A DNA stretch of 64,000 nucleotides from positions 62,001-126,000 of the IMG/VR virus record IMGVR_UViG_3300033153_015063. One strand, given 5' to 3'. This document shows positions 10,773-61,009 of this stretch, in pieces (position 1 is the stretch's first letter; each line of letters starts with the position of its first letter). The notes under the pieces are model-generated. The model did no database searches. It had not been told where the DNA came from and saw nothing but the letters and a program-made list of their open reading frames with translations. Made by a program: the position numbers and the translations under genes.

Positions 10773-10872
10773 GGGCAAAAGAGGGTTTCGAACCCTCACC
10801 TTCATCGGACCATATCGCCCCGGTAAAGGGGCCATGACCCTGATGATGTGCTTCCACTTACACTACATTGCC
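10773..10872 (-). ncRNA. tRNA-like RNA (100 nt) with an extended anticodon arm
   Basis: acceptor GGCAATG/TTTTGCC; D arm GTGT/GCAC with GG loop; stem TCATC/GATGA enclosing a 35-nt hairpin; T arm GAGGG-TTCGAAA-CCCTC. Confidence 0.7.
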
Positions 10873-10924: not shown

Positions 10925-13900
10925 TCAGAACTCCATGTACTGACCGATGTCCCACGTCAGGTCGAACCAGAAGCTATGGATGAGAATGAACATCACCACC
11001 CACAGAAGATACACACCGATCAGTTTGAAGGACAGATCATAGACACCACCGAAACCAAGGGTGTCACCAAGGAATAACAGAGTCAGGATGGTGGCGATGA
11101 AGGCCAACAGGAACCACATGAACCATCCCTCGAAGATGAGTTCGTTATGGTCCTTGTCAACCTTTTCATCACTGACGACTGCGGTCACGTTCTGCACCTG
11201 GACCACCGTTACATGGGTCTTCTGGACGAGTATCTCAACGCTATCGGTGACGTCGGGGTCTGTATCACTCAAGCTGTCGGTAACATCTACGATAAGCGTA
11301 CAGGTCAGGTTGTCGATCTCGTCGTCGAGTGTGGGTGCTGTGTAGGTCCCCCATGCATCTGTGTCGAGGGCCTGCGAGACGCCGCCACAGTCGATAGTGC
11401 TGTTTTCTCCCTCGACGCTGAAGTCGTAGTAGAGGGTGTCTCCGTTGGCGTCGGTGGCCTGCACCATGAACTTCCCGGTTTCCTCAGGGGCAATAACCTC
11501 GTCGAAGGCAATGAACCTGATGATAATAGGTTCATACTCGGTCGTCCCTCCATCAGGCTGCACAATGATACAGTCGTCACAGACTGTGGTAGCGTCCTCA
11601 ACGATGTCAGTGCCAGCCGCTGAATGGTCTGTGGTGGTATGGTCCACCACAGTATCATCTACTTGTCCATCAGCACCATCGCTGTATCCGACAAGGTTGT
11701 TGTTATCCTTCAGAGACCATGTAGCATCAGTGACACCAAGACCGAAGTTCTCGTTGTTCTGGTTCTTGATATCCTCCTCGACTGTGTTGGAAGGTGCCGC
11801 CAGAACCTGGGTCTGGACCCCGAACTTGTCGTTGTTCTCGGCGTGGTTGTTCCAGATAGAGATGTCGTAGTCATCCACTACCAGTCCGAGGCTGGAGTAG
11901 ATAACCATCATAAACGCAGACCCACAGGACGAGTCAGCCAACCCGATGAGCTTGGTTCCCACAGGGGCACATGCTGCGGGGAGTGGTTCGGTCATATCTA
12001 TGACCTCATAGTTACTCATCTTGATGACATACTCATCGTTCATGTCCTCGGTCAACCAGAGATTCACCGAGTTACCTTCACCGCCACTCTGGGAAACGTT
12101 CTCGGAAAGAAGTGGTGCATTGAAGTTGACGATTCCGCTATCTACCTCGTTGAGAACGTTGTTGCTGAACATCGTAACATCAAACCCACAGTCAACTGGA
12201 GTAGGAAGCAATGGGCTACATGTCGTACTCTCGATGTTGAACAGGGCATTGCTTCGATGTGAGAAGTCGGTGTTGTTCACAGAGTAAGAGACTGTGTTGG
12301 GTCTGGTGGAAGGATTCCCGGTCATCAGTGCAACTGTGGATAGGGTCCCCCCAATATCGTCATTACCAGGAACTCCTGCCATGTTCATCAGGAACGGCAT
12401 ACCGTTATCTCCGGTCAATGGACCGATGACGCTGCCACCGTTGATTTCGAGGCTACCGAAGTTCCAGATGCCCATACCACCACCCTGGAAGGTGACCTTA
12501 CCGTGTGTCTGGTCACCGATGGCCTTGATAGTCCCATAGTTCTGGATAGTAACCACATCATCCACGTTATCGTGTTGGACAGTGGCACCACTCTCGATGT
12601 AAAGAGTATGTCCAGCGGGCACATAAACCCCCTGTGGACTGGGCGTCAATGGGTTGGTGTCAACGTAGTTGTCGAGGTCTCCAGTGTTGTCAGAATCGAC
12701 CACAGCAACAGTATCACCGTCGTAAGGATTGACCCACACAGCTCCCTCGTCCCGTTCCCAGATGAACACCCCGTACCACGGATGGTCCTGTTCTGGATGA
12801 CAGAACCAGTTTGCACCACGATAGTGGTCATGGGCCCATGCATAGAACTCCACGTTGTCGGGGTCGATGACACCAGTATCGAATGATACTTCCCAGAGGT
12901 TCGGGGTGTCGACGTTCTCGGCCATGTCCTCAACGTGCCATCCCTCGTCATACCGCTTCATCACCATGTCGACATAGGTAGGTACATCCACAAGCCAGTC
13001 ATGGACGGCGAAAGATGGATAGACCATCTTGAATGGTGGCATGACAGAGAGAGATGCACCATACTCGAACTGGAACCAGAAGCTATCTTCGTCAACGTCA
13101 TACCAGGTCCGGTCGATCAACGAGAGGTCGGTTCCAGAGAAGGGGATGGCCGCTTCGAACGAGCGAACATCGTTATCATGGTTACAAAGGTCGATGGTGC
13201 TGGCTGGCCCATAGTCTGTGAAACCAACTGCGAACTCGATGGTAGTGATGTCCTGATAAGGAGAACCACCGAGACCGCTTCCGACTGTATAGGTCAGGTA
13301 TTCATCATACACCCCGTCCATGTCGTAGTCAGAGTAGAGAGAGATGGTCTCGGTTCCATCGTCGATGTCGTTGCACATCACTCCGCCGAGATAGAGAAAC
13401 TCTGTGGACATATCAGCATAGGCGTAGAGATAGGTGTTGTCCTCAGTGTAGTAAGATGTCGGGGCATAGACACTATCCCAACCACCTTCCCGCTGCTTGA
13501 AGGTCTGGAGGTTCATCCAGTCCTCGGTAGTATCGAGCTCGCCATCGACTGTTGGAATGTCGAAAGAGTATGCTGGATGGATGCCACTGGTGGTGGCTGG
13601 GCTATCGGTCCAGGGGACCTGCCAGATATACGGATTATCCTCGGAAAGCTCATCGTAGGGCACGGCAACCAGGCGATCCTCATAACGATCTCGCCGCATC
13701 GAGGTCTCTGCGTTACCAAAGAGGGAAGGGACATTGATGGCCCCGGTCTCCTCGACACTATCATCGGTTTGATCCCTCCAGAAGAGTTTTATCTCCTTAA
13801 TCTGTTCATCATCTTCATCGTAGACCACGAAACTGGTGTCTACGATGGTTGTCTCCTCGACATAGGTATAGGAGTATTCCAGCATCCGGGGTAGGCCCTG

Positions 13901-15397
13901 GATTCCCACATCATCCCATGCGGGACCCTCGATCTTCGGGTTGACACGGGGGTCAGCTCCACCAGCAACCTGTTCGGCGAGATAAGGACGCTCAGCGGTC
14001 TCAATCTTACCAGCAGTACCAGTGGTGGCATCAGACCCGAAGTAGGTCACCATGTTCCCCTTGACGAAGTTCTCCTCAGGCTGAAGATTGTAGATGCTAC
14101 ACCGGTAGAGTCCGCCACTCGGTTCCTGCAAGTAGAACTGAAGATTCCACCATGCCTCGAAACCGTTGTCCTGGAGGTTGTTATGGAAAAGTATCGTGGA
14201 CATCTGACCGGCGACCCAGTCGAAGGGCTGTGGGATGAAGATATACCCAAAGCCCCAGTAATTAGTCGCAAGGTCATAGACCAACTGCCCATCCAACTTG
14301 ATGTCAACAACCCCGAAATCTCCGTTGTCGGAAATCTCGTTGTAACGGATGTTCGGGGAAGAATCAAAGATGTAAATTCCTGTGCAGATTCTTGGTGGGA
14401 AAGGGAATGGAATCTGCACCACGACATCTTCGGAAATACCCTCGATACCGTCCAGCCACCCGTCACCATCAGTGTCTACGTCGATGTCCGGGTCTGGATC
14501 TCTGATGAGGTCAAACCATGGGCTGACCTCGTCCATATTCCCGGTTATCTCATTGAGTTCGATGAGAGGAGAAGCTGGTCCATAGTGGTAGTACTCAGGG
14601 ATCTCTGGTTCTGGTTGGTAGGATGCCTCAGGGAATACATCAGCAGGCACCTCGTAGACACCACACATGAGATGGAAAGCGGGTATCGACGGTGCATTCA
14701 TGGCCAGACCAACCAGGATACCCGCACCGTTACCATGAATCCGAGAGTTGGAGATAGTAACGGTAGGGTGGTCCCTATCCATCGAACGACCACAGACCGA
14801 GATGCCTATATATGCATCAGTGACGTCGGCATGGTCTATGTGAACGATACGGTCAGAAAAGCCACCCATCCAACCTGGGTAGTGTTGGGCTGGAAGGATA
14901 TGGATTCCACCCCACAGTTCCTCCCAGTAGGGCGGATCGTCCACAAGAGAGTTCTGGTTCGTGAATCTGACCATACCCTCGTCATAGGTCCCACGCACGA
15001 TGATGGACCCATAGACGTAGATACCCACGTTGTAGGTTGTCCATGGGCTGGGGTCATCATAGTCACCGGGGATGTCATTGGGGCCATCAGGGTCCAACCA
15101 GTAATTGGCGTGTCCGCCACCACCGAGGGCACGGACCTCTACACCGGCCTCTATGACCAATGTCTTTTCTGGCGGGATGATGAGGTCCCCGTTCAGGAAG
15201 TATTCCCCTCTCTCCCAGTGTTCGTCAGAAGAAAGGATGTATGGAACACCAGCAGTCGATACATAGGTGACTTCCGTCTCTCCATCTTCGACAGAGGTTG
15301 AAAATCCAAGCTTCGGAGCGTTTACCCAGAGAACGGCCACAAGCAGGAACACTCCCACTACGGCCAGCGGTCTCTTGAGGTCCTCAAACATTACCAT
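10925..15397 (-). CDS. large acidic surface protein with beta-helix repeats and two C-terminal TM helices
   Basis: 1490-aa ORF; LVIEAGVEV, WGGI and SSPNIRYNEISDN patterns. Confidence 0.85.
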   Translation of the reverse strand: MVMFEDLKRPLAVVGVFLLVAVLWVNAPKLGFSTSVEDGETEVTYVSTAGVPYILSSDEHWERGEYFLNGDLIIPPEKTLVIEAGVEVRALGGGGHANYWLDPDGPNDIPGDYDDPSPWTTYNVGIYVYGSIIVRGTYDEGMVRFTNQNSLVDDPPYWEELWGGIHILPAQHYPGWMGGFSDRIVHIDHADVTDAYIGISVCGRSMDRDHPTVTISNSRIHGNGAGILVGLAMNAPSIPAFHLMCGVYEVPADVFPEASYQPEPEIPEYYHYGPASPLIELNEITGNMDEVSPWFDLIRDPDPDIDVDTDGDGWLDGIEGISEDVVVQIPFPFPPRICTGIYIFDSSPNIRYNEISDNGDFGVVDIKLDGQLVYDLATNYWGFGYIFIPQPFDWVAGQMSTILFHNNLQDNGFEAWWNLQFYLQEPSGGLYRCSIYNLQPEENFVKGNMVTYFGSDATTGTAGKIETAERPYLAEQVAGGADPRVNPKIEGPAWDDVGIQGLPRMLEYSYTYVEETTIVDTSFVVYDEDDEQIKEIKLFWRDQTDDSVEETGAINVPSLFGNAETSMRRDRYEDRLVAVPYDELSEDNPYIWQVPWTDSPATTSGIHPAYSFDIPTVDGELDTTEDWMNLQTFKQREGGWDSVYAPTSYYTEDNTYLYAYADMSTEFLYLGGVMCNDIDDGTETISLYSDYDMDGVYDEYLTYTVGSGLGGSPYQDITTIEFAVGFTDYGPASTIDLCNHDNDVRSFEAAIPFSGTDLSLIDRTWYDVDEDSFWFQFEYGASLSVMPPFKMVYPSFAVHDWLVDVPTYVDMVMKRYDEGWHVEDMAENVDTPNLWEVSFDTGVIDPDNVEFYAWAHDHYRGANWFCHPEQDHPWYGVFIWERDEGAVWVNPYDGDTVAVVDSDNTGDLDNYVDTNPLTPSPQGVYVPAGHTLYIESGATVQHDNVDDVVTIQNYGTIKAIGDQTHGKVTFQGGGMGIWNFGSLEINGGSVIGPLTGDNGMPFLMNMAGVPGNDDIGGTLSTVALMTGNPSTRPNTVSYSVNNTDFSHRSNALFNIESTTCSPLLPTPVDCGFDVTMFSNNVLNEVDSGIVNFNAPLLSENVSQSGGEGNSVNLWLTEDMNDEYVIKMSNYEVIDMTEPLPAACAPVGTKLIGLADSSCGSAFMMVIYSSLGLVVDDYDISIWNNHAENNDKFGVQTQVLAAPSNTVEEDIKNQNNENFGLGVTDATWSLKDNNNLVGYSDGADGQVDDTVVDHTTTDHSAAGTDIVEDATTVCDDCIIVQPDGGTTEYEPIIIRFIAFDEVIAPEETGKFMVQATDANGDTLYYDFSVEGENSTIDCGGVSQALDTDAWGTYTAPTLDDEIDNLTCTLIVDVTDSLSDTDPDVTDSVEILVQKTHVTVVQVQNVTAVVSDEKVDKDHNELIFEGWFMWFLLAFIATILTLLFLGDTLGFGGVYDLSFKLIGVYLLWVVMFILIHSFWFDLTWDIGQYMEF

Positions 15398-15490: not shown

Positions 15491-15528
15491 TTACGCTTTT
15501 TGTGGTTTAAATCAGGCAAACTTTATAT
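15491..15528 (+). promoter_or_regulatory. upstream motif plus TATA box driving the tRNA-like RNA at 15551
   Basis: TTACGCTTTTTGTGGTT at 15491-15507; TTTATAT at 15522. Confidence 0.65.
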
Positions 15529-15550
15529 TTCAGAGCTCGAAGGGAAGTGT

Positions 15551-15688
15551 GCGGTGGAAGCTCAACTGGTTGGAGCCCCCCGGCCGTCATACCGGGGGAG
15601 GAGCAGAAGCCCGGAGCGAAGTGGCTGGTACCTAGGCTATACCAACCACAAGCAACACCGGGAGGCGGTTCAAATCCGGCCCACCGCA
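15551..15688 (+). ncRNA. tRNA-like RNA (138 nt) with a CAT-containing loop and a ~60-nt variable-arm insertion
   Basis: acceptor GCGGTGG/CCACCGC; D arm GCTC/GAGC; stem CCCCCGG/CCGGGGG with loop CCGTCATA; T loop TTCAAAT; own promoter. Confidence 0.7.
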
Positions 15689-15757: not shown

Positions 15758-15796
15758 TTACGGTTTTTACGGTTATACATGAGCAACCATTATATA
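15758..15796 (+). promoter_or_regulatory. upstream motif plus TATA box
   Basis: TTACGGTTTTTACGGTT at 15758-15774; TTATATA at 15790. Confidence 0.7.
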
Positions 15797-15819: not shown

Positions 15820-16380
15820 ATGTCTCTTAAGAAGCTCTCTATTGGTGATGTTTTCTATCTGAAAAGCCCCACCAGGGAAAATAGCCCTGATGATTATCAG
15901 ATTTTGAAGGTCAAACAAATCACAAACTACGCTCACCCAAAAGGAGACCGTAATGTAACCGAGATGAACGGGGATGACATAGTTGACATCACCTTCGAAG
16001 TTCCACTCCACGAAAATACCTACGGCGACAAACCTTTCCGCCCTGAGCATGACTTCTATGATGTTTCGCTGTCTGATTTGGATTGGCTGGAAATCGACAA
16101 AGCACCCGTCCCAACATCCTGTACGCTTGGAATTATGGGTCGCTATGGAAAGGACGAGGAGTGGACTGAGTTGAAGGGCAAGAAGAACCGCACAGTCCAC
16201 AAGTCCGGCGAGAACGGGTCACCTGTCTGTGGGTCGAAGGCAACATCACACATCTTTAAACCCGATGGCCGATGGGACCCCTGGAACAAGCACTGGTGTA
16301 AGGAGGAAGAGAGTGTTACCTGCTGGGTGCCATCATTCCGGGAACCCACATGTAAAAAGTGCTTGAAGAAAGTTGAATAA
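15820..16380 (+). CDS. hypothetical protein with a C-terminal zinc-finger-like motif
   Basis: H...CG...TCKKCLK; motif-bearing promoter. Confidence 0.75.
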   Translation: MSLKKLSIGDVFYLKSPTRENSPDDYQILKVKQITNYAHPKGDRNVTEMNGDDIVDITFEVPLHENTYGDKPFRPEHDFYDVSLSDLDWLEIDKAPVPTSCTLGIMGRYGKDEEWTELKGKKNRTVHKSGENGSPVCGSKATSHIFKPDGRWDPWNKHWCKEEESVTCWVPSFREPTCKKCLKKVE

Positions 16381-23699: not shown

Positions 23700-23762
23700 C
23701 CTTTAGCCAGAAAACAAACCCTCCCGAACTCTTTATATACTCAACACCCATTGTATTCCTTG

Positions 23763-24452: not shown

Positions 24453-24548
24453 CCACCTCCTCCATCATCCCTCCGTATCTTCCCACCTCCCACCTCCATC
24501 CTCCCCCGAACTCTTTAAATACTCCTCAGCCCATCCCACATTGATACC

Positions 24549-27985: not shown

Positions 27986-29346
27986 AAAAAGTCTCTATCT
28001 TCCTCTTACTGAGTTCAGTAGTGTTACTCTCGATGCTGGGAACTGTTGCGTCTTTCAACCCATCTTACACAGTCTATGGGGTTATCGAGACGGTAGAAGG
28101 TAACCCTATCCAGGATGCAAGTGTCACGGTGACAAACACTGATACAAACGAGAGTCTGAATACTACCACAGGTAGTGAGGGGAAGTATCAGGTCAACCTC
28201 GGTAACCTTCCATCAGGATGGTCGATAGGCGATACCATCGACATCGAGGTATCTTTTGATGATGTCACTGTAAACGACAACTTCACCACATCTGGAAACA
28301 GAAAGATGGTGGACTTCGAGTTGACCTTCTCAGACCCGGTGGCAATCATCATCTTCACCCCCGAGACCGTCTTTGTGGGTGATGTTGTCGAGTTCGACGG
28401 GTCATCATCATGGTCTAACGGCACCATTACCAACTGGAACTGGATTTTCGGCGACGATGATGCCGATGGAGGTGTGGATGTAACACACGTCTATGATGAA
28501 GCGGGTGTATACGAGGTCAGCCTGGCGATTGTAGATAACTACACGATGGCCGATACTCACTCTATCAACATCACAGTTTTGGAACCGTTCTGGAGTGGTT
28601 CAGCGTCATACGAAGTCAGACAGGGTGTCGATAGATGGATTGACATCTCTGAAAACCTGGTCTCTGATGCTTCTGTCGAATGTGCCGATAGTAGAGTGTC
28701 CTTTGTAGTAGAAAACAGTACATTGTTGTTGTCTTTCAACGCCGGAGATACCAACACTACATTACAACTTTCCATCACCAAGGAATATATTGTATACCAA
28801 CACTACATTACAATCGTAGTAGTAGAGGTATTCAGTGCTACATTATCCGCCAGTAACATCAACTCGTCAGGATTGATAGAGATTGAACTCTCAATTAACG
28901 GTGGAAAAACGCCTTATAGTATCGTGTGGGATTGGGGCGACGGAAATTACACGAACCTCACTACAAACCTGATCGAACTATCTTCCACTCACAACTACTC
29001 ATCTGTTGGTAACTATTCTATAGTATCCACAGTCACGGATGATGATGAATATAGTGTTATCAACGAGTATACTATAACCTTTGCCGATGAGGATGAAGAC
29101 GATGATAGTGCAGGCAACACAGCTACAGTGCTTACTGAGAACCAGAAAAAACAGGTAAGTGCTGTAACTATTACTGCTCTTGAAGTAGTTTTAGTCCTCT
29201 TTATGACTGTTTTCCTTTTCATGGTAGTTTCTAAAGTTGTAGAAATGAATACAACTAAGCTTGTGTTTATTCTACTGATTATCAGTGGGGCTATCTCTCT
29301 TTTATATGGTTGGATTGACCTATTCAGATTATTGGCATGGTGGTAA
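27982..29346 (+). CDS. surface protein with PKD domains and two C-terminal TM helices
   Basis: GGAGGT RBS; signal peptide; WIFGDD and WDWGDG motifs. Confidence 0.8.
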
Positions 29347-32300
29347 AAATGGATTTAAAAGACAAACCTATGCTACTCAGTGTAATGCTGGTCATCGGCA
29401 TCTTCGCTGTCGGTGGAGTTCTATGGTATAGCGGTTACTTTACAGTAGTTGTAGAACCATATCCTGTAACTATCCACTCGGATAGTCTCGATGATCTCTC
29501 AGGTCATCTGAACCTTGAGGTCACTGACGAAGTAGACGACTACGACGACGATGGATGGTCATACGGTGACGAGGAAACCGATGAGTTGGGGAGTGGCTGG
29601 GCTGAGATACCAACGGCCCAACCAATCTCGGCATCCTTCTCGGTTTATGTCCGAGACTGGGGGGAGAAAGAACCCGATAACGATGGTGGGGTAGTTCATC
29701 ACAACCCATCGTTTGCCTTTTTTCTTTCAACAGCCGATACCCTGACCCTTGACGAAACCAATGGTGTCGAGGTAATCTCTCTCGGAGACTTCTACATCTT
29801 CGTCGGTCTGGTATGGGAGAACAAACACGACAGGTACAAAGTAGAGTTTGGTTGTATGGAGAACAAACTCCACCACAAACATCCTGGTCAGATGGATGCC
29901 CTCGATGACTGGCATGTCGTAGATATTATCTACGACGGAAATTATGCCTACCTCAATCTGGAAGAACGAGACCAGAAAGGTAAAGGGTGGAAACATGGCC
30001 TGTTCAGGTTGGACTGTAAGGTAGAAACTACTATCAGCTCAGTAGGGTTTGAGTTCAACAAGAACCACTTTCTCGATGGAATAACCCTGACTGACGATGG
30101 AGAAGGTTCAGAACCTTTCGTTGATGCTGGTGAGGATTTTGATGCCATAGAGGATGTCTCCTTTGATGTTTCGGGTGATTATGGACATATGCCTACCGAT
30201 GTTGATGGAGTCTGGTGGGACATGGATGACAGCGACGGTACCGACGACCGGGATATCGCCACCAGGGATGGTTCATGGGTCTACGGGGACCCAGGGATTT
30301 ACACCGCTACGTTCTGCGTCGAGCTTGACGATGCTTCTCTCTATTGTGATAGTATCGAAATAGAGGTCGAGGCGATCTATCCTGACACCGATGGAGATGG
30401 TATCACTGACCCAGACGACAACTGCCCATCAATCCCCAACCCTGGGCAAGAGGATAATGACCTGGACGGCCTGGGTGATGTCTGTGACCCCGACGATGAT
30501 AACGACGGCGTTCTTGACACTACAGACAACTGCCAGTTCATCTGGAACCCACTCCAGGCCGACAACGACCTGGATGGTCTGGGTGACGTCTGCGATGACG
30601 ACGACGACAACGATGGCATCCTTGATACTGTCGACAACTGTCAATACACCTACAATCCCTTGCAAACAGACATTGATAGCGATGGAGAGGGTGACGCTTG
30701 TGATGGAGACCTCGATGGTGATGGGGTTCCCAACACATCTGACAACTGCCCATCAATCCCCAACCCTGGGCAAGAGGATAATGACCTGGACGGCCTGGGT
30801 GATGTCTGTGACCCCGACGACGATGATGATGGAGTTCTGGATGGGCCAGACAACTGCCAATATGTAGCAAACCCCCTACAAACAGACACCGATGCAGATG
30901 GACTTGGAGATGCATGTGACCCTGACGACGATAACGACGGTGAACCCGACACTACGGATAACTGCCAACTCATCTACAACCCAGACCAGATTGATACCGA
31001 TAGTGATGGTCTGGGTGATGTCTGTGACCCTGATGATGATGATGATACAATCCTGGACCCCGTTGACAACTGCCCTTTGACAGCAAACTTGGGGCAGGAA
31101 GATAACGATGCCGATGGGATAGGGGACGTGTGTGACCCCGACGATGATAACGACGGTGTGTTGGATGGGCCAGACAACTGCCAATACACTCCAAACCCAT
31201 CTCAACTCGATACTGACAGCGATGGGGAGGGTGACGCCTGTGACACCGACGACGATGGAGACGGTGTGTTGGATGGTCCAGACAACTGCCCGTTGACGCC
31301 GAACCCAGGACAGGATGATACTGATGGAGACAGCCTTGGAGACCTGTGCGATCCTGACGACGACAACGACGGCGTTCTTGACTGGGCCGACAACTGCCAG
31401 TATGTCGTGAATCCATCCCAGGCCGACAACGACGGAGATTCACTCGGTGATGCCTGTGACCCTGATGATGATGATGATGGTGTTCTCGATGGGGCCGACA
31501 ACTGCCCCTTCACCCCCAACCCAGGACAGGAAGACCTGGACTCCGACGGCCATGGTGACGCCTGTGATGATGATTGGGACGGCGACGGTATTGATAACGG
31601 GGATGATAACTGCCCAATCGTCCCCAACCCGGGGCAGGAAGACGCTGACGAGGATGGGGTCGGCGATGCCTGTGAGGATGATACCGACGGTGATGGTATC
31701 CCTGACCCCCTGGATAACTGTGTGTTGACGCCTAACCCCGACCAGACTGACACGGACGGGGACGGTGACGGGGACGCTTGCGACACCGACGACGACGACG
31801 ATACAATCCTGGACCCAGACGACAACTGCCCCCTTATCCCCAATCCAGGGCAGGAGGACAACGACCTGGATGGTCTGGGTGATGTCTGTGACCCGGACGA
31901 CGACAACGACGAGATAGACGACCCAGAAGATAATTGCCCTCTGGTCACAAATCCAGGACAGGAGGACCTGGACGAGGACGGGGTCGGTGACGTCTGTGAT
32001 GACGACGATGATGGTGATGGTATCTCTGATGAAGATGATAACTGCCCGACCATCCAGAACCCTTCTCAGACTGACACTGACGTAGATGGAATCGGTGATG
32101 CCTGCGACAGCGATGATGATGGCGATGGTGTTCCTGATACTACAGATAACTGCCCCTTGACCCCGAACAGCGACCAGGCTGACACGGATGGGGATGGTAT
32201 AGGCGATGCCTGTGAGGAACCCATCACAATCATACTCTTTGACATCTCTGACAACGTCACCTACATCGTCAATACAAGGGTGAACTTCTCTGGAGTGATT

Positions 32301-32729
32301 ATCTCTCCAGAGGACTGTTCGTTCTTATGGGAGTTTGGTGACGACAGAACGGCAAATGTCAAGGGCCCGAGTCACATCTGGTTATGGCTTGGGGAGTTCC
32401 AGATGAACATCACCGTGACCTGCGACCTGGACGAGGAGAAGAAGGTTGTCAACGTGACTATCGTTGAATCTGCACCTGGTCCTGCTGGCAAGGCCGAGGT
32501 GGTGTCAAAGATGGAATATCCGTTGACATACTTCCTTGTGCCGTTCCTCGTGTTATTCGGTCTCGGACTGTTTGTGTTCCAGGCCCCGACGTTGGTAGAT
32601 AACCAGAAGTACGTCATGGCCGTTATGTTGGGCATCATAGCGATAATGATGTTCGAGTTCTTCGGCATCACCAGCTACTCTGTCAACTTTGGGGCGATCT
32701 ACTCTGGCATGGGAGTTACACCGAGGTGA
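29337..32729 (+). CDS. surface protein with PKD domains and 17 thrombospondin type 3 repeats
   Basis: 17 units of DNCP..PNP.Q.D.D.DG.GD.CD; N-terminal anchor; two C-terminal TM helices. Confidence 0.9.
30380..32216 (+). repeat. 17 x 108-bp coding repeat (thrombospondin type 3)
   Basis: counted DNC motifs; units 1 and 4 share about 80 identical bp. Confidence 0.85.
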
Positions 32730-41968: not shown

Positions 41969-42044
41969 AGGCGGGTAGCGGATTCGAACCGCTGTGGTCT
42001 CTACAGGTGATGTATGATATGAGACACACCTCCATCGACCCACC
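41969..42044 (-). ncRNA. 76-nt tRNA-like RNA lacking a D-stem, with an anti-RBS loop
   Basis: acceptor GGTGGGT/ACCCGCC; stem GTCTC/GAGAC around loop ATATCATACATCACCTGTA; T arm AGCGG-TTCGAAT-CCGCT. Confidence 0.7.
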
Positions 42045-47859: not shown

Positions 47860-48678
47860 TCATTCATTAATTTTACTTCCATCACCTTCAATATACAGTG
47901 CTATTCTACTATAGTTCCTGTCAAGTACTGCACGAACACCACCAGCTCTCCATCCCTTCTTTCGTCTGGTAACTATTCCCATTTTCTCCAACTCAGAGGC
48001 TATCTCTGATGCGTTCAGACCCTTTTCATCCAGTTCCCTGATGATAACGATGACTGTCTGTTCATCTTCTCTCTCAATCAATCTGGTGTTTTCTTTTTTG
48101 AGAACACCGCCACCCTTGTCGACTACATCGGATTTGACTTTGTAGCCATATGGTGCCTGCCCCACCCACTCTCCTGAACGCTGTTTTTGTTTGACACCTC
48201 GACGGGTATGCTGAGAAATCTTCATCCTCTCGTACTCTGCCATGTTGACCAGTTGCACGAACACAGAACGCCCCTCGGCTGTCCAAAGATCCAGGAATCT
48301 TACGGACTTGATAACCAACCTGACGCCGTATTTCCTGAGCTCATCCAGCATCCATAGGGCTTCCTTCACATCCCTCCCGAAACGATCCTCTTTTGCCACC
48401 GCAACGATGTCAAAAGCACGTTCCCTGGCGTCCGCAAGGAGTTGCTGGATCGCTTCTCTCTTCTCGATAGATGAACCCGTTTCCTCATCAGAGTAGGTCC
48501 TGGTCCATCTCCACCCACTTTCCTCATCGCACCATTCCTTGATTTCCTTCTCCTGGGCAGGTAGTGAGAAACGCCCTGAGATGAGTTTGTCGGACTTGCG
48601 AATGTATGCGACCACGATGAAACTCGGGCCGTCTTGTTCAAGCTTTGCGGTTGACAACTGAAATTTTGTACTGGGCAA
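47860..48678 (-). CDS. serine recombinase (resolvase domain plus recombinase-type C-terminus)
   Basis: AYIRKS catalytic motif; YSDEETGS...R; DRFGR; GQAPYGY. Confidence 0.9.
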   Translation of the reverse strand: MPSTKFQLSTAKLEQDGPSFIVVAYIRKSDKLISGRFSLPAQEKEIKEWCDEESGWRWTRTYSDEETGSSIEKREAIQQLLADARERAFDIVAVAKEDRFGRDVKEALWMLDELRKYGVRLVIKSVRFLDLWTAEGRSVFVQLVNMAEYERMKISQHTRRGVKQKQRSGEWVGQAPYGYKVKSDVVDKGGGVLKKENTRLIEREDEQTVIVIIRELDEKGLNASEIASELEKMGIVTRRKKGWRAGGVRAVLDRNYSRIALYIEGDGSKINE

Positions 48679-49282: not shown

Positions 49283-50233
49283 ATGTCAGAAACACGTAAA
49301 CGAGTGGCGATGTATATCAGGGTCTCAATCGACGAACAATCCAGGGATGGATACGATGTCAAGTCCCAGGTCAGAAATCTTCGCAATTATATTGCTATGA
49401 AAGAAGGGTGGATTGAAGGTTGGGAATATAGTGATGATGGTTACGATTGTGATGAGAAAAGGCCGGCTTATGAACGGTTGTGGGATGAAATAGATGAATG
49501 GGATGTTCTTCTCATCTGGAAGTTGGACCGTATCCACAATGACATGCCAGGTTTACTGAACATGGGCATCAAACTGGCAGACAACGACAAGGACCTGGCG
49601 TCAGTCAGTGAACTTATCGACACCACTTCTGACATGGGCCGTCATCTCTATCACATCTTCGGAGCTCTGATCCAATTCGAGAACAAAAACCCACGTTCTG
49701 TCTCTCTACCCCATCCTACTTTCATTGATGATGGAGTAGTGGCCGATAGTCAAGAAGTGGAAGTTCCTACCCCTGAAACAGGAACGCCGGTAGCTACGCT
49801 TACAGGTAAGTGGATAACATCTCCACCATTTGGTTATGATATTGACAAAGAACCAGAGTCAAAGGGCCACCTGGTCGTGAACGAGGAAGAAAGTAATGTT
49901 GTTAGATACATCTTCTATCTACGGTTCAAGTTAGAGAACCCCGACTTATTCAAACCATATCAGTGGGATAGTAAGAGAGCCGGCCTCAATGTCCCATACT
50001 ACCGCACCTACCAGGACATCGCAGACCTACTCCACGACAAAGGTATCAGAACAAAGAAGGGAAAGCGATGGACTCCTTGTGCCATCAGAAGGGTCTGTGT
50101 TAACCCCATCTACTGGGGTATATTCAGGTACGGGAGTGAAGAAATGTTGGGTGGACATGAACAATTAACCCCCGAACCAGGTACTGCGGCGATGGGTGAG
50201 TGGGATTGGAAACCGCCCGATGGAGAAGAGTAA
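49283..50233 (+). CDS. serine recombinase
   Basis: MYIRVSIDEQ; RPAY; WKLDRI; PPFGY; IA..L...GI.T..G..W; NPIYWG. Confidence 0.9.
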   Translation: MSETRKRVAMYIRVSIDEQSRDGYDVKSQVRNLRNYIAMKEGWIEGWEYSDDGYDCDEKRPAYERLWDEIDEWDVLLIWKLDRIHNDMPGLLNMGIKLADNDKDLASVSELIDTTSDMGRHLYHIFGALIQFENKNPRSVSLPHPTFIDDGVVADSQEVEVPTPETGTPVATLTGKWITSPPFGYDIDKEPESKGHLVVNEEESNVVRYIFYLRFKLENPDLFKPYQWDSKRAGLNVPYYRTYQDIADLLHDKGIRTKKGKRWTPCAIRRVCVNPIYWGIFRYGSEEMLGGHEQLTPEPGTAAMGEWDWKPPDGEE

Positions 50234-50530: not shown

Positions 50531-50883
50531 TTTACGCTTTTTACAGTTGAACAATCGTAAGACCGTTGTTGTCACAATCGGTCCTATTTCAATAGTTTAA
50601 TATTCTCTGAAGTAGTTGACGCTATCAAGAACGTTGGTGGGAGTATCAGACTGTAACCCTATGATATGTCCAGGGTTTCCAAAACCACACCCGCTACTTT
50701 TCCACCATGGCCGTCAAGCTACCCCAGGCCATCCTTTCCTGGTGGGTTTACCCGGATACGATTGTTAGATATAAACTGTCTCTTATAAAAATGTATCTTG
50801 TTTGCATCAAACGTATTGGTGAGATGTTTATAAAGGAACTGTAAAATATCAGGCATCTTATAAAAGTCCTGTACCATCACGTG

Positions 50884-51042
50884 AGAGCTTTATATACTCA
50901 CAAGTAGGCCAGAGCTTTATATACTCACAAGTAGGCCAGAGCTTTATATACTCACAAGTAGGCCAGAGCTTTATATACTCACAAGTAGGCCAGAGCTTAT
51001 ATACTCACAAGTAGGCCAGAGCTTTATATACTCACAAGTAGG
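50884..51042 (+). repeat. 6 x 27-bp tandem repeat AGAGCTTTATATACTCACAAGTAGGCC
   Basis: units start at 50884, 50911, 50938, 50965, 50992 (one T missing) and 51018 (partial). Confidence 0.95.
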
Positions 51043-51083
51043 TTACGTTCTTTACGGTATTGGCCTAAGATACGTTTCTAATG

Positions 51084-51800
51084 TGTAGTAGTAGTGTAGT
51101 AGTAGTAGGTAGTAGTGTAGTAGTAGTAGGTAGTAGTGTAGTAGTAGTAGGTAGTAGTGTAGTAGTAGTGTAGTAGTGTAGTAGTAGTAGGGTAGGTAGT
51201 AGTGGAATTAAATGTGAAGCACTGTGGATGGGGTAGGTAAGATAGGTAGGTAACGGAATTAAATGTGAGACAGTAGATGCCGTAATAATAGTAATAGTAG
51301 TAATAACTGTAACAGGAAAATTAAATGTTATCAGTCAGTACACAGTTGTTTGGCACTATGGTAACCAAATTAAATGAAATCAGTTCACTCTCAAAAGCGT
51401 AATTTTTGAAATTCTACCATCCCGTACACACGTGTATGGCAAGGAGATAGTTAGTAAGTAGTAGTAGTGGTAGTAGATAGGGTAGATAGGGTAGTAGAAT
51501 TAAATGAAATATGGTAGGTAGTAGTAGGTAGTAGTAGGTAGTAGTAGGTAGTAGTAGTAGGTAGTAGTAGGTAGGTAGGTGGTAGGGTCAGAATTAAATG
51601 AAATAGGGTAGTAGGGGGTAGTAGTAGGGTAGTAGGGGGTAGTAGTAGGTCAGAATTAAATGAAATAGGGTAGTAGGGGGTAGTAGTAGGGTAGTAGGGG
51701 GTAGTAGTAGGGTAGTAGGGGGTAGTAGTAGATAAGGTAGGTAGGGTAGGTGGGTCAGAATTAAATGAAAGTAGGTATGATGTATCAGTAGTGGTAGTAG
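51084..51800 (+). repeat. GTA/GGTA low-complexity tract with 8 AATTAAATG boxes; candidate origin or terminal region
   Basis: + strand is G-rich and C-poor; no ORFs. Confidence 0.8.
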
Positions 51801-51887
51801 CTAATGGTTGTAATTTCTGTTAGTTATACTGGGCTTATGTCCAAGGAATTATATAAGAGTAAGACCTATAAAACCCCTATAGGCCCT

Positions 51888-52000
51888 ATATATTTCCAGC
51901 CTCAATCTCTATAGTCTTTATATACTGCAGATGGCTTCATTACAGCATGGTACAGGGGGGTATCTTTTTTCCCCCTATGGTTAAATACTCCCTTTTATGG
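51888..52000 (-). repeat. 113-bp inverted repeat, right copy
   Basis: exact reverse complement of 36417-36529. Confidence 0.9.
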
Positions 52001-52134
52001 GGTTGGTTCTATGGAAGTATATTTCTGAAATCGAGGCTGAGTTATACTGACTATAGAGACAGCGGCATCGTAATCCATAGGAATTTACCATGACCCAGAA
52101 GTTATGTATAGGTAAGGTTTGGTACTGTAGTTAG

Positions 52135-52389
52135 TTATTCTACGATCTTTCTGGGGTTACCATCATCCCCAAGTGTATATCTGTTACCAGATCCATAAGG
52201 AAATTCAATCACCCCGGTGTTTTTCTTGCGATGGATCTTACATTTTGGGCACCACGAGAGTTTTCCTGCATCCCTCAACTTGGTGTCACACTCGGGGCAC
52301 CAACCCTGGATTAGTTCCAATGCACCTTTCAAAGCAGTCATACTGACTTCTCTGCCCACTCTTTTTGTCCTCCTATACTTTGGACCCAT
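52135..52389 (-). CDS. zinc-ribbon protein with a leader-like motif at the C-terminus
   Basis: CPEC...CPKCKIH followed by VIEFPYGSGNRY. Confidence 0.7.
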   Translation of the reverse strand: MGPKYRRTKRVGREVSMTALKGALELIQGWCPECDTKLRDAGKLSWCPKCKIHRKKNTGVIEFPYGSGNRYTLGDDGNPRKIVE

Positions 52390-52712: not shown

Positions 52713-53168
52713 TCAGTCATCTGGGCGTGGGCCTGGGCCTTCCCACCACCAATAGTACATCACACCATCATCTCCCTCTCGTTCATCTCGAAACCACTTC
52801 GTTCCACAAACAGGGCAATAGATCACACTCCTTATCTCGTGGGCTGATGCTACCGCACCAAGGCAACAAAGGTTATCGCCTCCAAATTGGGATTCTTCGA
52901 AGGTCTCACTATTGAGACAATGTTTACAGGTAACCTTTTTTACATCAATGGTGCAAAGAATGTCCTTTGGAGATACACCACAAGAGACAGTATTCTCACT
53001 TGTCCAATAGTGGACCATTGGTCCCTTCTGATTAACAGGTTTTGATGGGTCGTCACTTTCTTGTATTGCACTACCTTTGACATGGATCTTACATCTCCGG
53101 CACCAATACGCTTTACCTACCTCTTTTAGATTATCCCCACAATCGGGACAGACGTTAGTCATCCTCAT
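52713..53168 (-). CDS. multi-zinc-finger protein
   Basis: CPDC...CRRCKIH, TCKHC and CPVC. Confidence 0.7.
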   Translation of the reverse strand: MRMTNVCPDCGDNLKEVGKAYWCRRCKIHVKGSAIQESDDPSKPVNQKGPMVHYWTSENTVSCGVSPKDILCTIDVKKVTCKHCLNSETFEESQFGGDNLCCLGAVASAHEIRSVIYCPVCGTKWFRDEREGDDGVMYYWWWEGPGPRPDD

Positions 53169-60674: not shown

Positions 60675-61009
60675 TACAGACACCTAGGATGATTATGGAT
60701 GAGCTGAGGAGTATATAAAATGTTTGATGGGGAGTGAGGAGGTGGGAGGTGGTGGGAGGATGGGTCGATTTGGGAGAGTAGTGTGAAAAATACCTGGGTT
60801 TGTCTACCGACAGTCACCTATCTCGTATCACTACGAGGTTTGTTACGCCCTCCGCATCAGCTTCGGCCCCAACCGGGTGTCTCTTTTGGTATCCTTCACG
60901 ATACGTTTCATCATCAGGTGTCCTTTTAAAGATTGTGTGATAGGTGATAGGTAATAGACACCAATAACCAACAGAACTCTTTATATCCTCCCTCCCCTAT
61001 CACTCTTCA

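Follow-up and report, generated by a model that had tools for sequence, protein, structure and literature searches.

The DNA analysed here, termed the window throughout, is a stretch of 64,000 nucleotides corresponding to bases 62001-126000 of the 242,596-bp JGI contig Ga0366824_1000500, which is recorded in IMG/VR as IMGVR_UViG_3300033153_015063. The majority of the window proteins do not belong to known families; those annotated are PKD and thrombospondin-type-3 (TSP3) repeat proteins, a PrsW protease, two serine recombinases and a RecT-like protein, and no gene for any RNA-processing enzyme was found in the window. Between the gene for a 1490-aa protein (10925-15397, minus strand) and that for a 186-aa protein (15820-16380, plus strand), sequence, Rfam alignment, fold and a cloverleaf-frame test delineate a tRNA-derived RNA of 138 nt on the plus strand (15551-15688), which begins with its first acceptor base and closes with the discriminator A. 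We consider this to be a genuine tRNA-derived gene, predicted to be transcribed independently.

The acceptor stem is formed by the 5' strand GCGGUGG (15551-15557) and the 3' strand CCACCGC, which together with the discriminator A occupies 15681-15688 and is not followed by an encoded CCA; all 7/7 pairs are Watson-Crick. A8 and A9 lead into the D arm (15560-15576; GCUC/AACUGGUUG/GAGC), in which G18G19 are present, and this is followed by an anticodon-like hairpin (15577-15598) with a stem of 7 bp (CCCCCGG/CCGGGGG) closing an 8-nt loop, CCGUCAUA. The loop can be read either as U33-CAU-A37 with three extra 5' bases or as C33-GUC-A37 with one extra base. Next comes an unpaired, purine-rich linker of 11 nt (AGGAGCAGAAG, 15599-15609), the first 5 nt of which resemble a normal variable loop, this AGGAG segment being found at the place of the variable loop, and then, at the position of the variable arm, an irregular hairpin of 53 nt (15610-15662; CCCGG..GUGG.UGGUA..UACCA.CCAC..CCGGG) with an apical loop of 9 nt containing the palindrome CCUAGG. 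A single A stands between this hairpin and the T arm (15664-15680; GGCGG/UUCAAAU/CCGGC), in which 4/5 pairs are formed and G50-G64 is a mismatch. Altogether 65 nt separate the anticodon-like arm from the T arm, the acceptor/T geometry is 7/5, and two near-universal tRNA positions are altered, position 8 being A instead of U and position 21 being G instead of A.

The minimum-free-energy fold of the 138-nt RNA (-60.3 kcal/mol, z -2.2) shows this structure, and the identical fold is retained within the predicted 220-nt transcript. Folded alone, the 53-nt hairpin reaches -19.4 kcal/mol (z -2.7 versus shuffles) and the anticodon-like hairpin -14.5 kcal/mol (z -2.1 versus shuffles). The preliminary description of this DNA had reported perfect acceptor and D stems, which we recover both in the sequence and in the minimum-free-energy fold, a 7-bp stem with an 8-nt loop containing UCAUA, which is present and can also be read as GUC, and a long hairpin insertion before the T arm, which we can now divide into the 11-nt linker and the 53-nt hairpin. 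A search of the window revealed neither a second copy of the insertion nor an antisense target, and reading the insertion by eye we noticed no C/D box, H/ACA or K-turn motif. A likeness of the anticodon-like hairpin to a CRISPR repeat was insignificant (E 9.9) and was discarded.

A local scan with the Rfam tRNA model (RF00005) aligned the acceptor, D and T arms with 25.3 bits (E 0.006 in a 601-nt scan), which is below the gathering score of 29 bits, and placed 82 nt where the anticodon arm should be; the score of the tRNA-Sec model was lower than that of the tRNA model. The RNA was reported by such local scans only, Rfam scans of the whole window at gathering or E-value thresholds returning nothing at 15551-15688, and ARAGORN made no call there with or without the intron option, lowered thresholds resulting in noise only. 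This shows that standard tRNA finders miss loci of such kind. The cloverleaf-frame test, which asks for a 7-bp acceptor, a D arm containing GG, 4 or more pairs in the T stem and a TTCRA loop, found two sites in the window, 15551-15688 and 41969-42044, compared to 0.11 per dinucleotide shuffle. Among the features by which a tRNA is recognised, the RNA has the 7-bp acceptor, the G18G19 D arm and the T-Psi-C-R-A loop with one G-G mismatch in the T stem, and it lacks U8, A21 and an anticodon arm with 5 bp in the stem and 7 nt in the loop (U33, purine 37).

An archaeal TATA box, CTTTATATT, is located at 15521-15529 on the plus strand, its first base lying 30 nt before G1 of the RNA. The consensus CTTTAWATA is found with its first base 28-32 nt before the start codons of 11 to ~15 window genes having no Shine-Dalgarno sequence (examples of the box are at 24514, 26037, 36285, 40351, 44393 and 63166), and 30 nt is the modal distance between box and start codon of these leaderless genes. 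The spacing therefore predicts a transcription start at about 15551, i.e. at the first acceptor base, so that an RNase P step would not be needed. A box of this type at leaderless spacing in the absence of a Shine-Dalgarno sequence is the signature of archaeal leaderless transcripts, and thus the host of this uncultivated 242-kb virus is an archaeon; a scan of the window found no enrichment of sigma-70 promoters or intrinsic terminators. A minority of the window genes have a GAGGTG ribosome-binding site instead of a leaderless promoter.

Upstream of the TATA box, at a distance of 30 nt, lies the motif TTACGCTTTTT (15491-15501, plus strand), which is over-represented in the window with 11 copies at up to one mismatch versus 0.42 expected; ten of these are at 1414, 15491, 15758, 16398, 17690, 34196, 42383, 50532, 55959 and 59405. 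Three copies are situated ~30 nt upstream of TATA boxes and four are found 2-18 nt past a same-strand stop codon, and the motif is probably a terminator or insulator. Because those four copies so closely follow stop codons, the copy at 15758-15768 (plus strand), TTACGGTTTTT, which lies 70 nt past the 3' end of the RNA, is the likely terminator of the unit; the next TATA box starts at 15789 and serves the gene of the 186-aa protein. On these signals the RNA is predicted to be a real, separate transcription unit. The preliminary description had assigned to it its own regulated promoter: the TATA box and its spacing support a promoter of its own, but not a regulated one, the shared upstream motif being more terminator-like, and the copy of TTACGCTTTTT in front of the TATA box may be the source of this claim.

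The predicted transcription start lies 3 nt before the in-frame GTG of an open frame (GTG at 15554, stop at 15862, 102 aa), which would fit a leaderless protein-coding gene. We regard this as barely credible: the codon-usage log-odds of the frame, -0.14 per codon, are in the spurious range (mean -0.075) while real small genes of the window have +0.03 to +0.22, the product would be Arg/Ser-rich, the frame crosses the promoter and the start of the next gene, and the tRNA frame at 15551-15688 is non-random.

The position of the insertion raises the question of an intron. The preliminary description had itself named a spliced intron resulting in an ordinary tRNA-Met as the competing explanation, and we do not find this, since the 8-nt loop remains after removal of the insertion. 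For the analysis we used the bulge-helix-bulge (BHB) definition of Marck and Grosjean 2003 as restated in bioRxiv 10.64898/2026.10.13.758758, i.e. a 4-bp central helix with two 3-nt bulges and a minimum of one flanking helix, located at the intron boundaries. A recursive search for canonical BHB motifs (hBHBh', hBH and HBh'), in which as many as three introns were allowed, gave 62 products, 0 of which were called by ARAGORN. The sole canonical motif within the variable region is an hBH excising RNA positions 67-113, which would leave an unstructured variable region of 18 nt, and at the boundary restoring a 5-nt variable loop (excision of 54-113, +/-3 nt) at most 2/4 central pairs are formed and a hand check gave no relaxed BHB. 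A search with relaxed BHB motifs is too permissive to inform, as is likewise stated in bioRxiv 10.64898/2026.10.13.758758. After deletion of the 60-nt insertion ARAGORN calls a tRNA of 78 nt, the 8-nt loop of which carries GUCA as a four-base anticodon, additional deletion of U40 results in a call of tRNA-Asp(GUC), and a 3-nt deletion gives a perfect CAU arm. Searching for single or double excisions that create a canonical anticodon arm, we obtained two solutions, one deleting 3 nt plus ~62 nt and the other building a Thr(GGU)-like arm from the hairpin apex; the latter was rejected, about one such solution being expected by chance. An alternative T stem at RNA positions 73-78, implying a 40-nt intron at 53/54, was rejected as well because no anticodon arm is then left. 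The RNA is not an ordinary intron-bearing tRNA, and whichever way the large insert is excised, the result is not an ordinary tRNA either.

With the intron-containing archaeal tRNAs, whose BHB motifs are substrates of EndA, the RNA shares the archaeal setting, an insertion at the non-canonical junction of variable region and T stem and an insertion length inside the known range. It differs in having no canonical or relaxed BHB at the boundary restoring a normal variable loop, in a spliced product that is still non-canonical and in that the sister tRNAs of the virus are intron-less. In Asgard archaea only ~21% of variable-region intervening sequences are found at canonical BHB boundaries (bioRxiv 10.64898/2026.10.13.758758), so that the absent motif lowers the probability of an intron and is not decisive.

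We consider it rather unlikely that the RNA is a working decoder, from which the insertion is removed by relaxed or unknown splicing or in which it is tolerated as a giant extra arm, and which would read GAY codons (Asp, GUC), AUG/AUA (CAU) or a four-base codon via the 8-nt loop. The ARAGORN calls after deletion argue for such a decoder, and so does the similarity to tRNA-Asp: the 5' 26 nt of the RNA, with three positions left free, matched 88 genomic sites, 74/88 being Patescibacteria tRNA-Asp(GUC), and the insertion-less product is identical to Patescibacteria tRNA-Asp in 61/78 positions, of which the first 26 nt are imposed by the search pattern. The amino acid composition would suit a viral tRNA-Asp, Asp being the most frequent residue of the window proteins (8.7%) and accounting for 22.6% of the TSP3 repeat protein (29337-32729, plus strand) and 10.3% of the 1490-aa protein adjacent to the RNA. 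Against a decoder stand the absence of any BHB, even relaxed, within 3 nt of the needed boundary, the persistence of the 8-nt loop after any excision, the lack of introns in the demonstrably canonical tRNAs of the virus and, for the Asp reading, C33 and a discriminator A instead of G73. The CAU reading keeps U33, A37 and A73, and as judged from the sequence the ancestry appears ambiguous, either Asp-GUC-like or Met/Ile2-CAU-like.

The virus and a relative encode tRNAs that are canonical. At 60859-60947 of the contig (minus strand; L099 13908-13996), ~1.05 kb left of the window, lies a canonical, intron-less class II tRNA-Leu(UAA) of 41.2 bits with an encoded CCA and a TATA box giving a leader of ~5 nt. 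The relative, JGI Ga0452204_000775 (L005/L098), encodes a 1475-aa protein that is 54% identical to the 1490-aa protein of the window, and at L005:14483-14552 a canonical, intron-less tRNA-Ile(UAU) of 43.2 bits. The odd architecture of the RNA is thus not simply the tRNA-gene style of this virus. The preliminary description had listed two further tRNA-like RNAs in the window, both of which we find. One, at 10773-10872 (minus strand, 37.5 bits), closely follows the stop codon of the 1490-aa gene, at the same place as the tRNA-Ile(UAU) of the relative; 28 nt inserted into its anticodon loop convert the arm to an 18-bp rod (z -2.55), its acceptor stem contains a U-U mismatch, and a BHB was not found in it. 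From its sequence it looks like a disrupted counterpart of the intact tRNA-Ile. The other, 76 nt long at 41969-42044 (minus strand), combines the acceptor GGUGGGU/ACCCGCC with a D stem that includes G-U pairs and with a good T arm; a credible anticodon arm is missing from it (its sequence includes UCAUAUCAUA), as is a consensus TATA box at the usual distance. For its 180-aa neighbour we found no homolog.

Where the window has the RNA and the gene of the 186-aa protein, the relative has only 81 nt. The two therefore represent an indel between the viruses, and this fits a recent gain. Searches of IMG/VR, JGI metagenome contigs, 185,579 species genomes, the first 31.7 kb of the relative and the window flanks gave no homolog of the RNA. 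The flanking proteins, searched in IMG/VR, matched the source contig only, and scanning for relatives with the regulatory motif gave only unrelated contigs.

These data bear on whether the RNA is a recently decayed tRNA pseudogene that is still transcribed and idle, having received a palindromic 60-nt insertion at the junction of variable loop and T stem, a second, small one in the anticodon loop and also a few point mutations. This is possible, if somewhat doubtful, and it accounts for the same data almost as well as the tRNA-shaped RNA that we favour below. Decay is suggested by the change of near-universal features (A8, G21, no canonical U33 in a 7-nt loop, G50-G64), by the RNA at 10773-10872, syntenic to the intact tRNA-Ile(UAU) of the relative and bearing both an insertion and a mismatch, by the likewise degenerate RNA at 41969-42044, by the missing locus in the relative and by the lack of homologs in the collections searched. 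What does not fit is the distribution of the changes: only one of about five substitution-type departures is located in a stem, though stems make up ~60% of the body, and every pair is formed in the acceptor (7/7), D (4/4) and anticodon-like (7/7) helices. Promoter and terminator are, moreover, intact and consensus-like, and the inserted segment folds better than shuffles.

The same indel could mark the remnant of a recombination or attachment site, a piece of a tRNA gene having arrived on a mobile segment together with the 186-aa gene, and two serine recombinases are encoded at 47.9-50.2 kb of the window (47860-48678, minus strand, and 49283-50233, plus strand, the genes being divergent and adjoining a repeat-rich non-coding region). 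To our knowledge, tRNA attachment sites are not typical of serine recombinases. The RNA is also not a half-tRNA, its cloverleaf frame being complete and including both acceptor strands, and it has a promoter of its own, the 3' 20-mer has no match in 185,579 species genomes and hence none to the 3' half of a host tRNA among these, and homologs of the 186-aa protein occur elsewhere, in other viruses, without a tRNA-like neighbour. Such a remnant is very improbable in our view, and both this and the coding gene are unlikely explanations. The 186-aa protein belongs to a small viral family with 23 representatives and invariant H127, C137, C178 and C181 (H-C-C-C), which probably form a zinc site. 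Its AlphaFold model (pLDDT 84) shows an SH3/Tudor-like N-terminal barrel; sequence searches gave no Pfam, PHROG or PDB match, and all fold matches were below Z 5 and uninformative.

Our tentative preference is for an expressed, tRNA-shaped RNA in which the acceptor/T half is kept and which is predicted not to decode normally. We rank it first because the helices are intact and the departures fall into unpaired conserved positions, and because promoter and terminator are consensus-like and the insert is well folded. Intact are the acceptor stem, the D stem, the elbow of G18G19 and T loop, and the T loop itself. According to this model, transcription would start at the first acceptor base, directed by the canonical viral TATA box at leaderless spacing, the terminator-like motif following 70 nt past the 3' end of the RNA; the trailer would be removed by RNase Z and the acceptor/T-arm half tailed by the CCA-adding enzyme. 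This would leave a stable tRNA-shaped RNA of ~138 nt, retaining the 60-nt insertion, i.e. the remainder of the linker and the hairpin, as an oversized extra arm and displaying the 7-bp/8-nt anticodon-like hairpin. The 8-nt loop and the lack of a U8-A14-A21 core triple and of an excisable intron would prevent normal decoding, and the RNA would instead act via its tRNA-like top half and exposed arms by binding or titrating some tRNA-recognising factor. The preliminary description had proposed a tRNA scaffold for non-decoding functions; that the RNA is not a standard decoder is supported by the failure of any excision to give an ordinary tRNA and by the canonical tRNAs of virus and relative, whereas the non-decoding function belongs to the tentative part of the model. 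Several observations count against a functional tRNA-shaped RNA: no homolog was found in the searched collections and hence there is no support from covariation or conservation, A8, G21 and the G50-G64 mismatch would weaken a tRNA mimic too, the disrupted RNA at 10773-10872 suggests tRNA decay in this lineage, and no partner protein was found, the 186-aa protein having an uninformative fold and its family members in other viruses having no tRNA-like RNA beside them.

A putative decoy against anticodon nucleases is one possibility compatible with the tRNA-shaped RNA. In a broader and quite improbable version, the archaeal virus would encode a set of tRNA mimics, among them this one with a promoter of its own, the decoding side of which has been rebuilt as long helices, acting as putative sponges or decoys for a tRNA-targeting defence nuclease of the host or a tRNA-modifying enzyme; the acceptor/T half would then be retained as the part grasped by RNase Z, by the CCA-adding enzyme and perhaps by a synthetase. 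If true, this would represent RNA-based counter-defence of a kind that is not known from archaea.

Compared to canonical tRNA (RF00005), the RNA has the same 7-bp acceptor, G18G19 D arm, UUCAAAU T loop and order of cloverleaf arms, and it is closest by sequence to tRNA-Asp(GUC) or readable as tRNA-Met/Ile2(CAU), but it scores only 25.3 bits and differs by A8, G21, G50-G64, the 7-bp stem with an 8-nt loop and the 65-nt segment. An extra stem-loop at the same topological position is found in class II tRNAs (Leu, Ser) and in tRNA-Sec. Their arms are, however, ~10-24 nt long whereas the segment here has 65 nt with a single-stranded lead of 11 nt, the loop holds CAU or GUC and not a Leu, Ser or Sec anticodon, the geometry of tRNA-Sec is 9/4 or 8/5 compared to 7/5, and the tRNA-Leu of the virus itself is normal, unlike this RNA.

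The vtRNA/TMER transcripts of murine gammaherpesvirus 68 are likewise viral tRNA-shaped RNAs with their own promoter, extra stem-loops and doubtful decoding. They are eukaryotic Pol III units in which the hairpins lie 3' of the tRNA-like part and are released by tRNase Z; in contrast, the hairpin described here is internal to the tRNA body, and the virus has an archaeal host. Some phage tRNAs evade the anticodon nucleases of the host by means of an altered anticodon loop (eLife 2023, PMC10264068; PARIS and the T5 tRNA, PMC11464382), and like the RNA at 15551-15688 they are virus-encoded with an anticodon loop departing from the host-like consensus, but they are working bacterial decoders whose loop keeps the normal 7 nt and is changed by point substitutions. 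The RNA studied here is altered in loop size and body, and no defence system or nuclease was identified. In bacteria, virus-encoded tRNAs are now viewed as tools against host immunity that cleaves tRNAs; we know of nothing comparable in archaeal viruses.

If functional, this tRNA body with an internal 60-nt extra arm and an expanded anticodon loop would represent either a novel type of tRNA mimic or a tRNA that naturally tolerates an extreme variable arm. If a pseudogene, it would document rapid decay of tRNA genes in a 242-kb archaeal virus, the relative of which keeps an intact copy at one shared locus.

Further observations were made in the window. TiaS is the archaeal enzyme modifying the CAU anticodon of tRNA-Ile2, and a 151-aa protein (52713-53168, minus strand) shows a weak, sub-threshold match to the C-terminal zinc ribbon of TiaS (E 0.0011), which is probably just a zinc ribbon. 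A multigene family has in common a near-identical promoter and a conserved N-terminal region of ~45 residues; its genes start in the window at 23751, 24549, 34138 (minus strand), 36255 (minus), 45112 (minus), 46224 (minus), 46691 (minus), 60683 (minus), 61010 and 61808, and more copies are present elsewhere on the contig. Inside a 1.7-kb non-coding gap (50531-52216), six tandem units of 27 nt, each with the promoter box CTTTATATAC, occupy 50884-51042 and are followed by long repeats of the (GTA)n type at 51085-51203 and 51514-51731; the tandem array together with these repeats could be a replication origin or an array binding a transcription factor.
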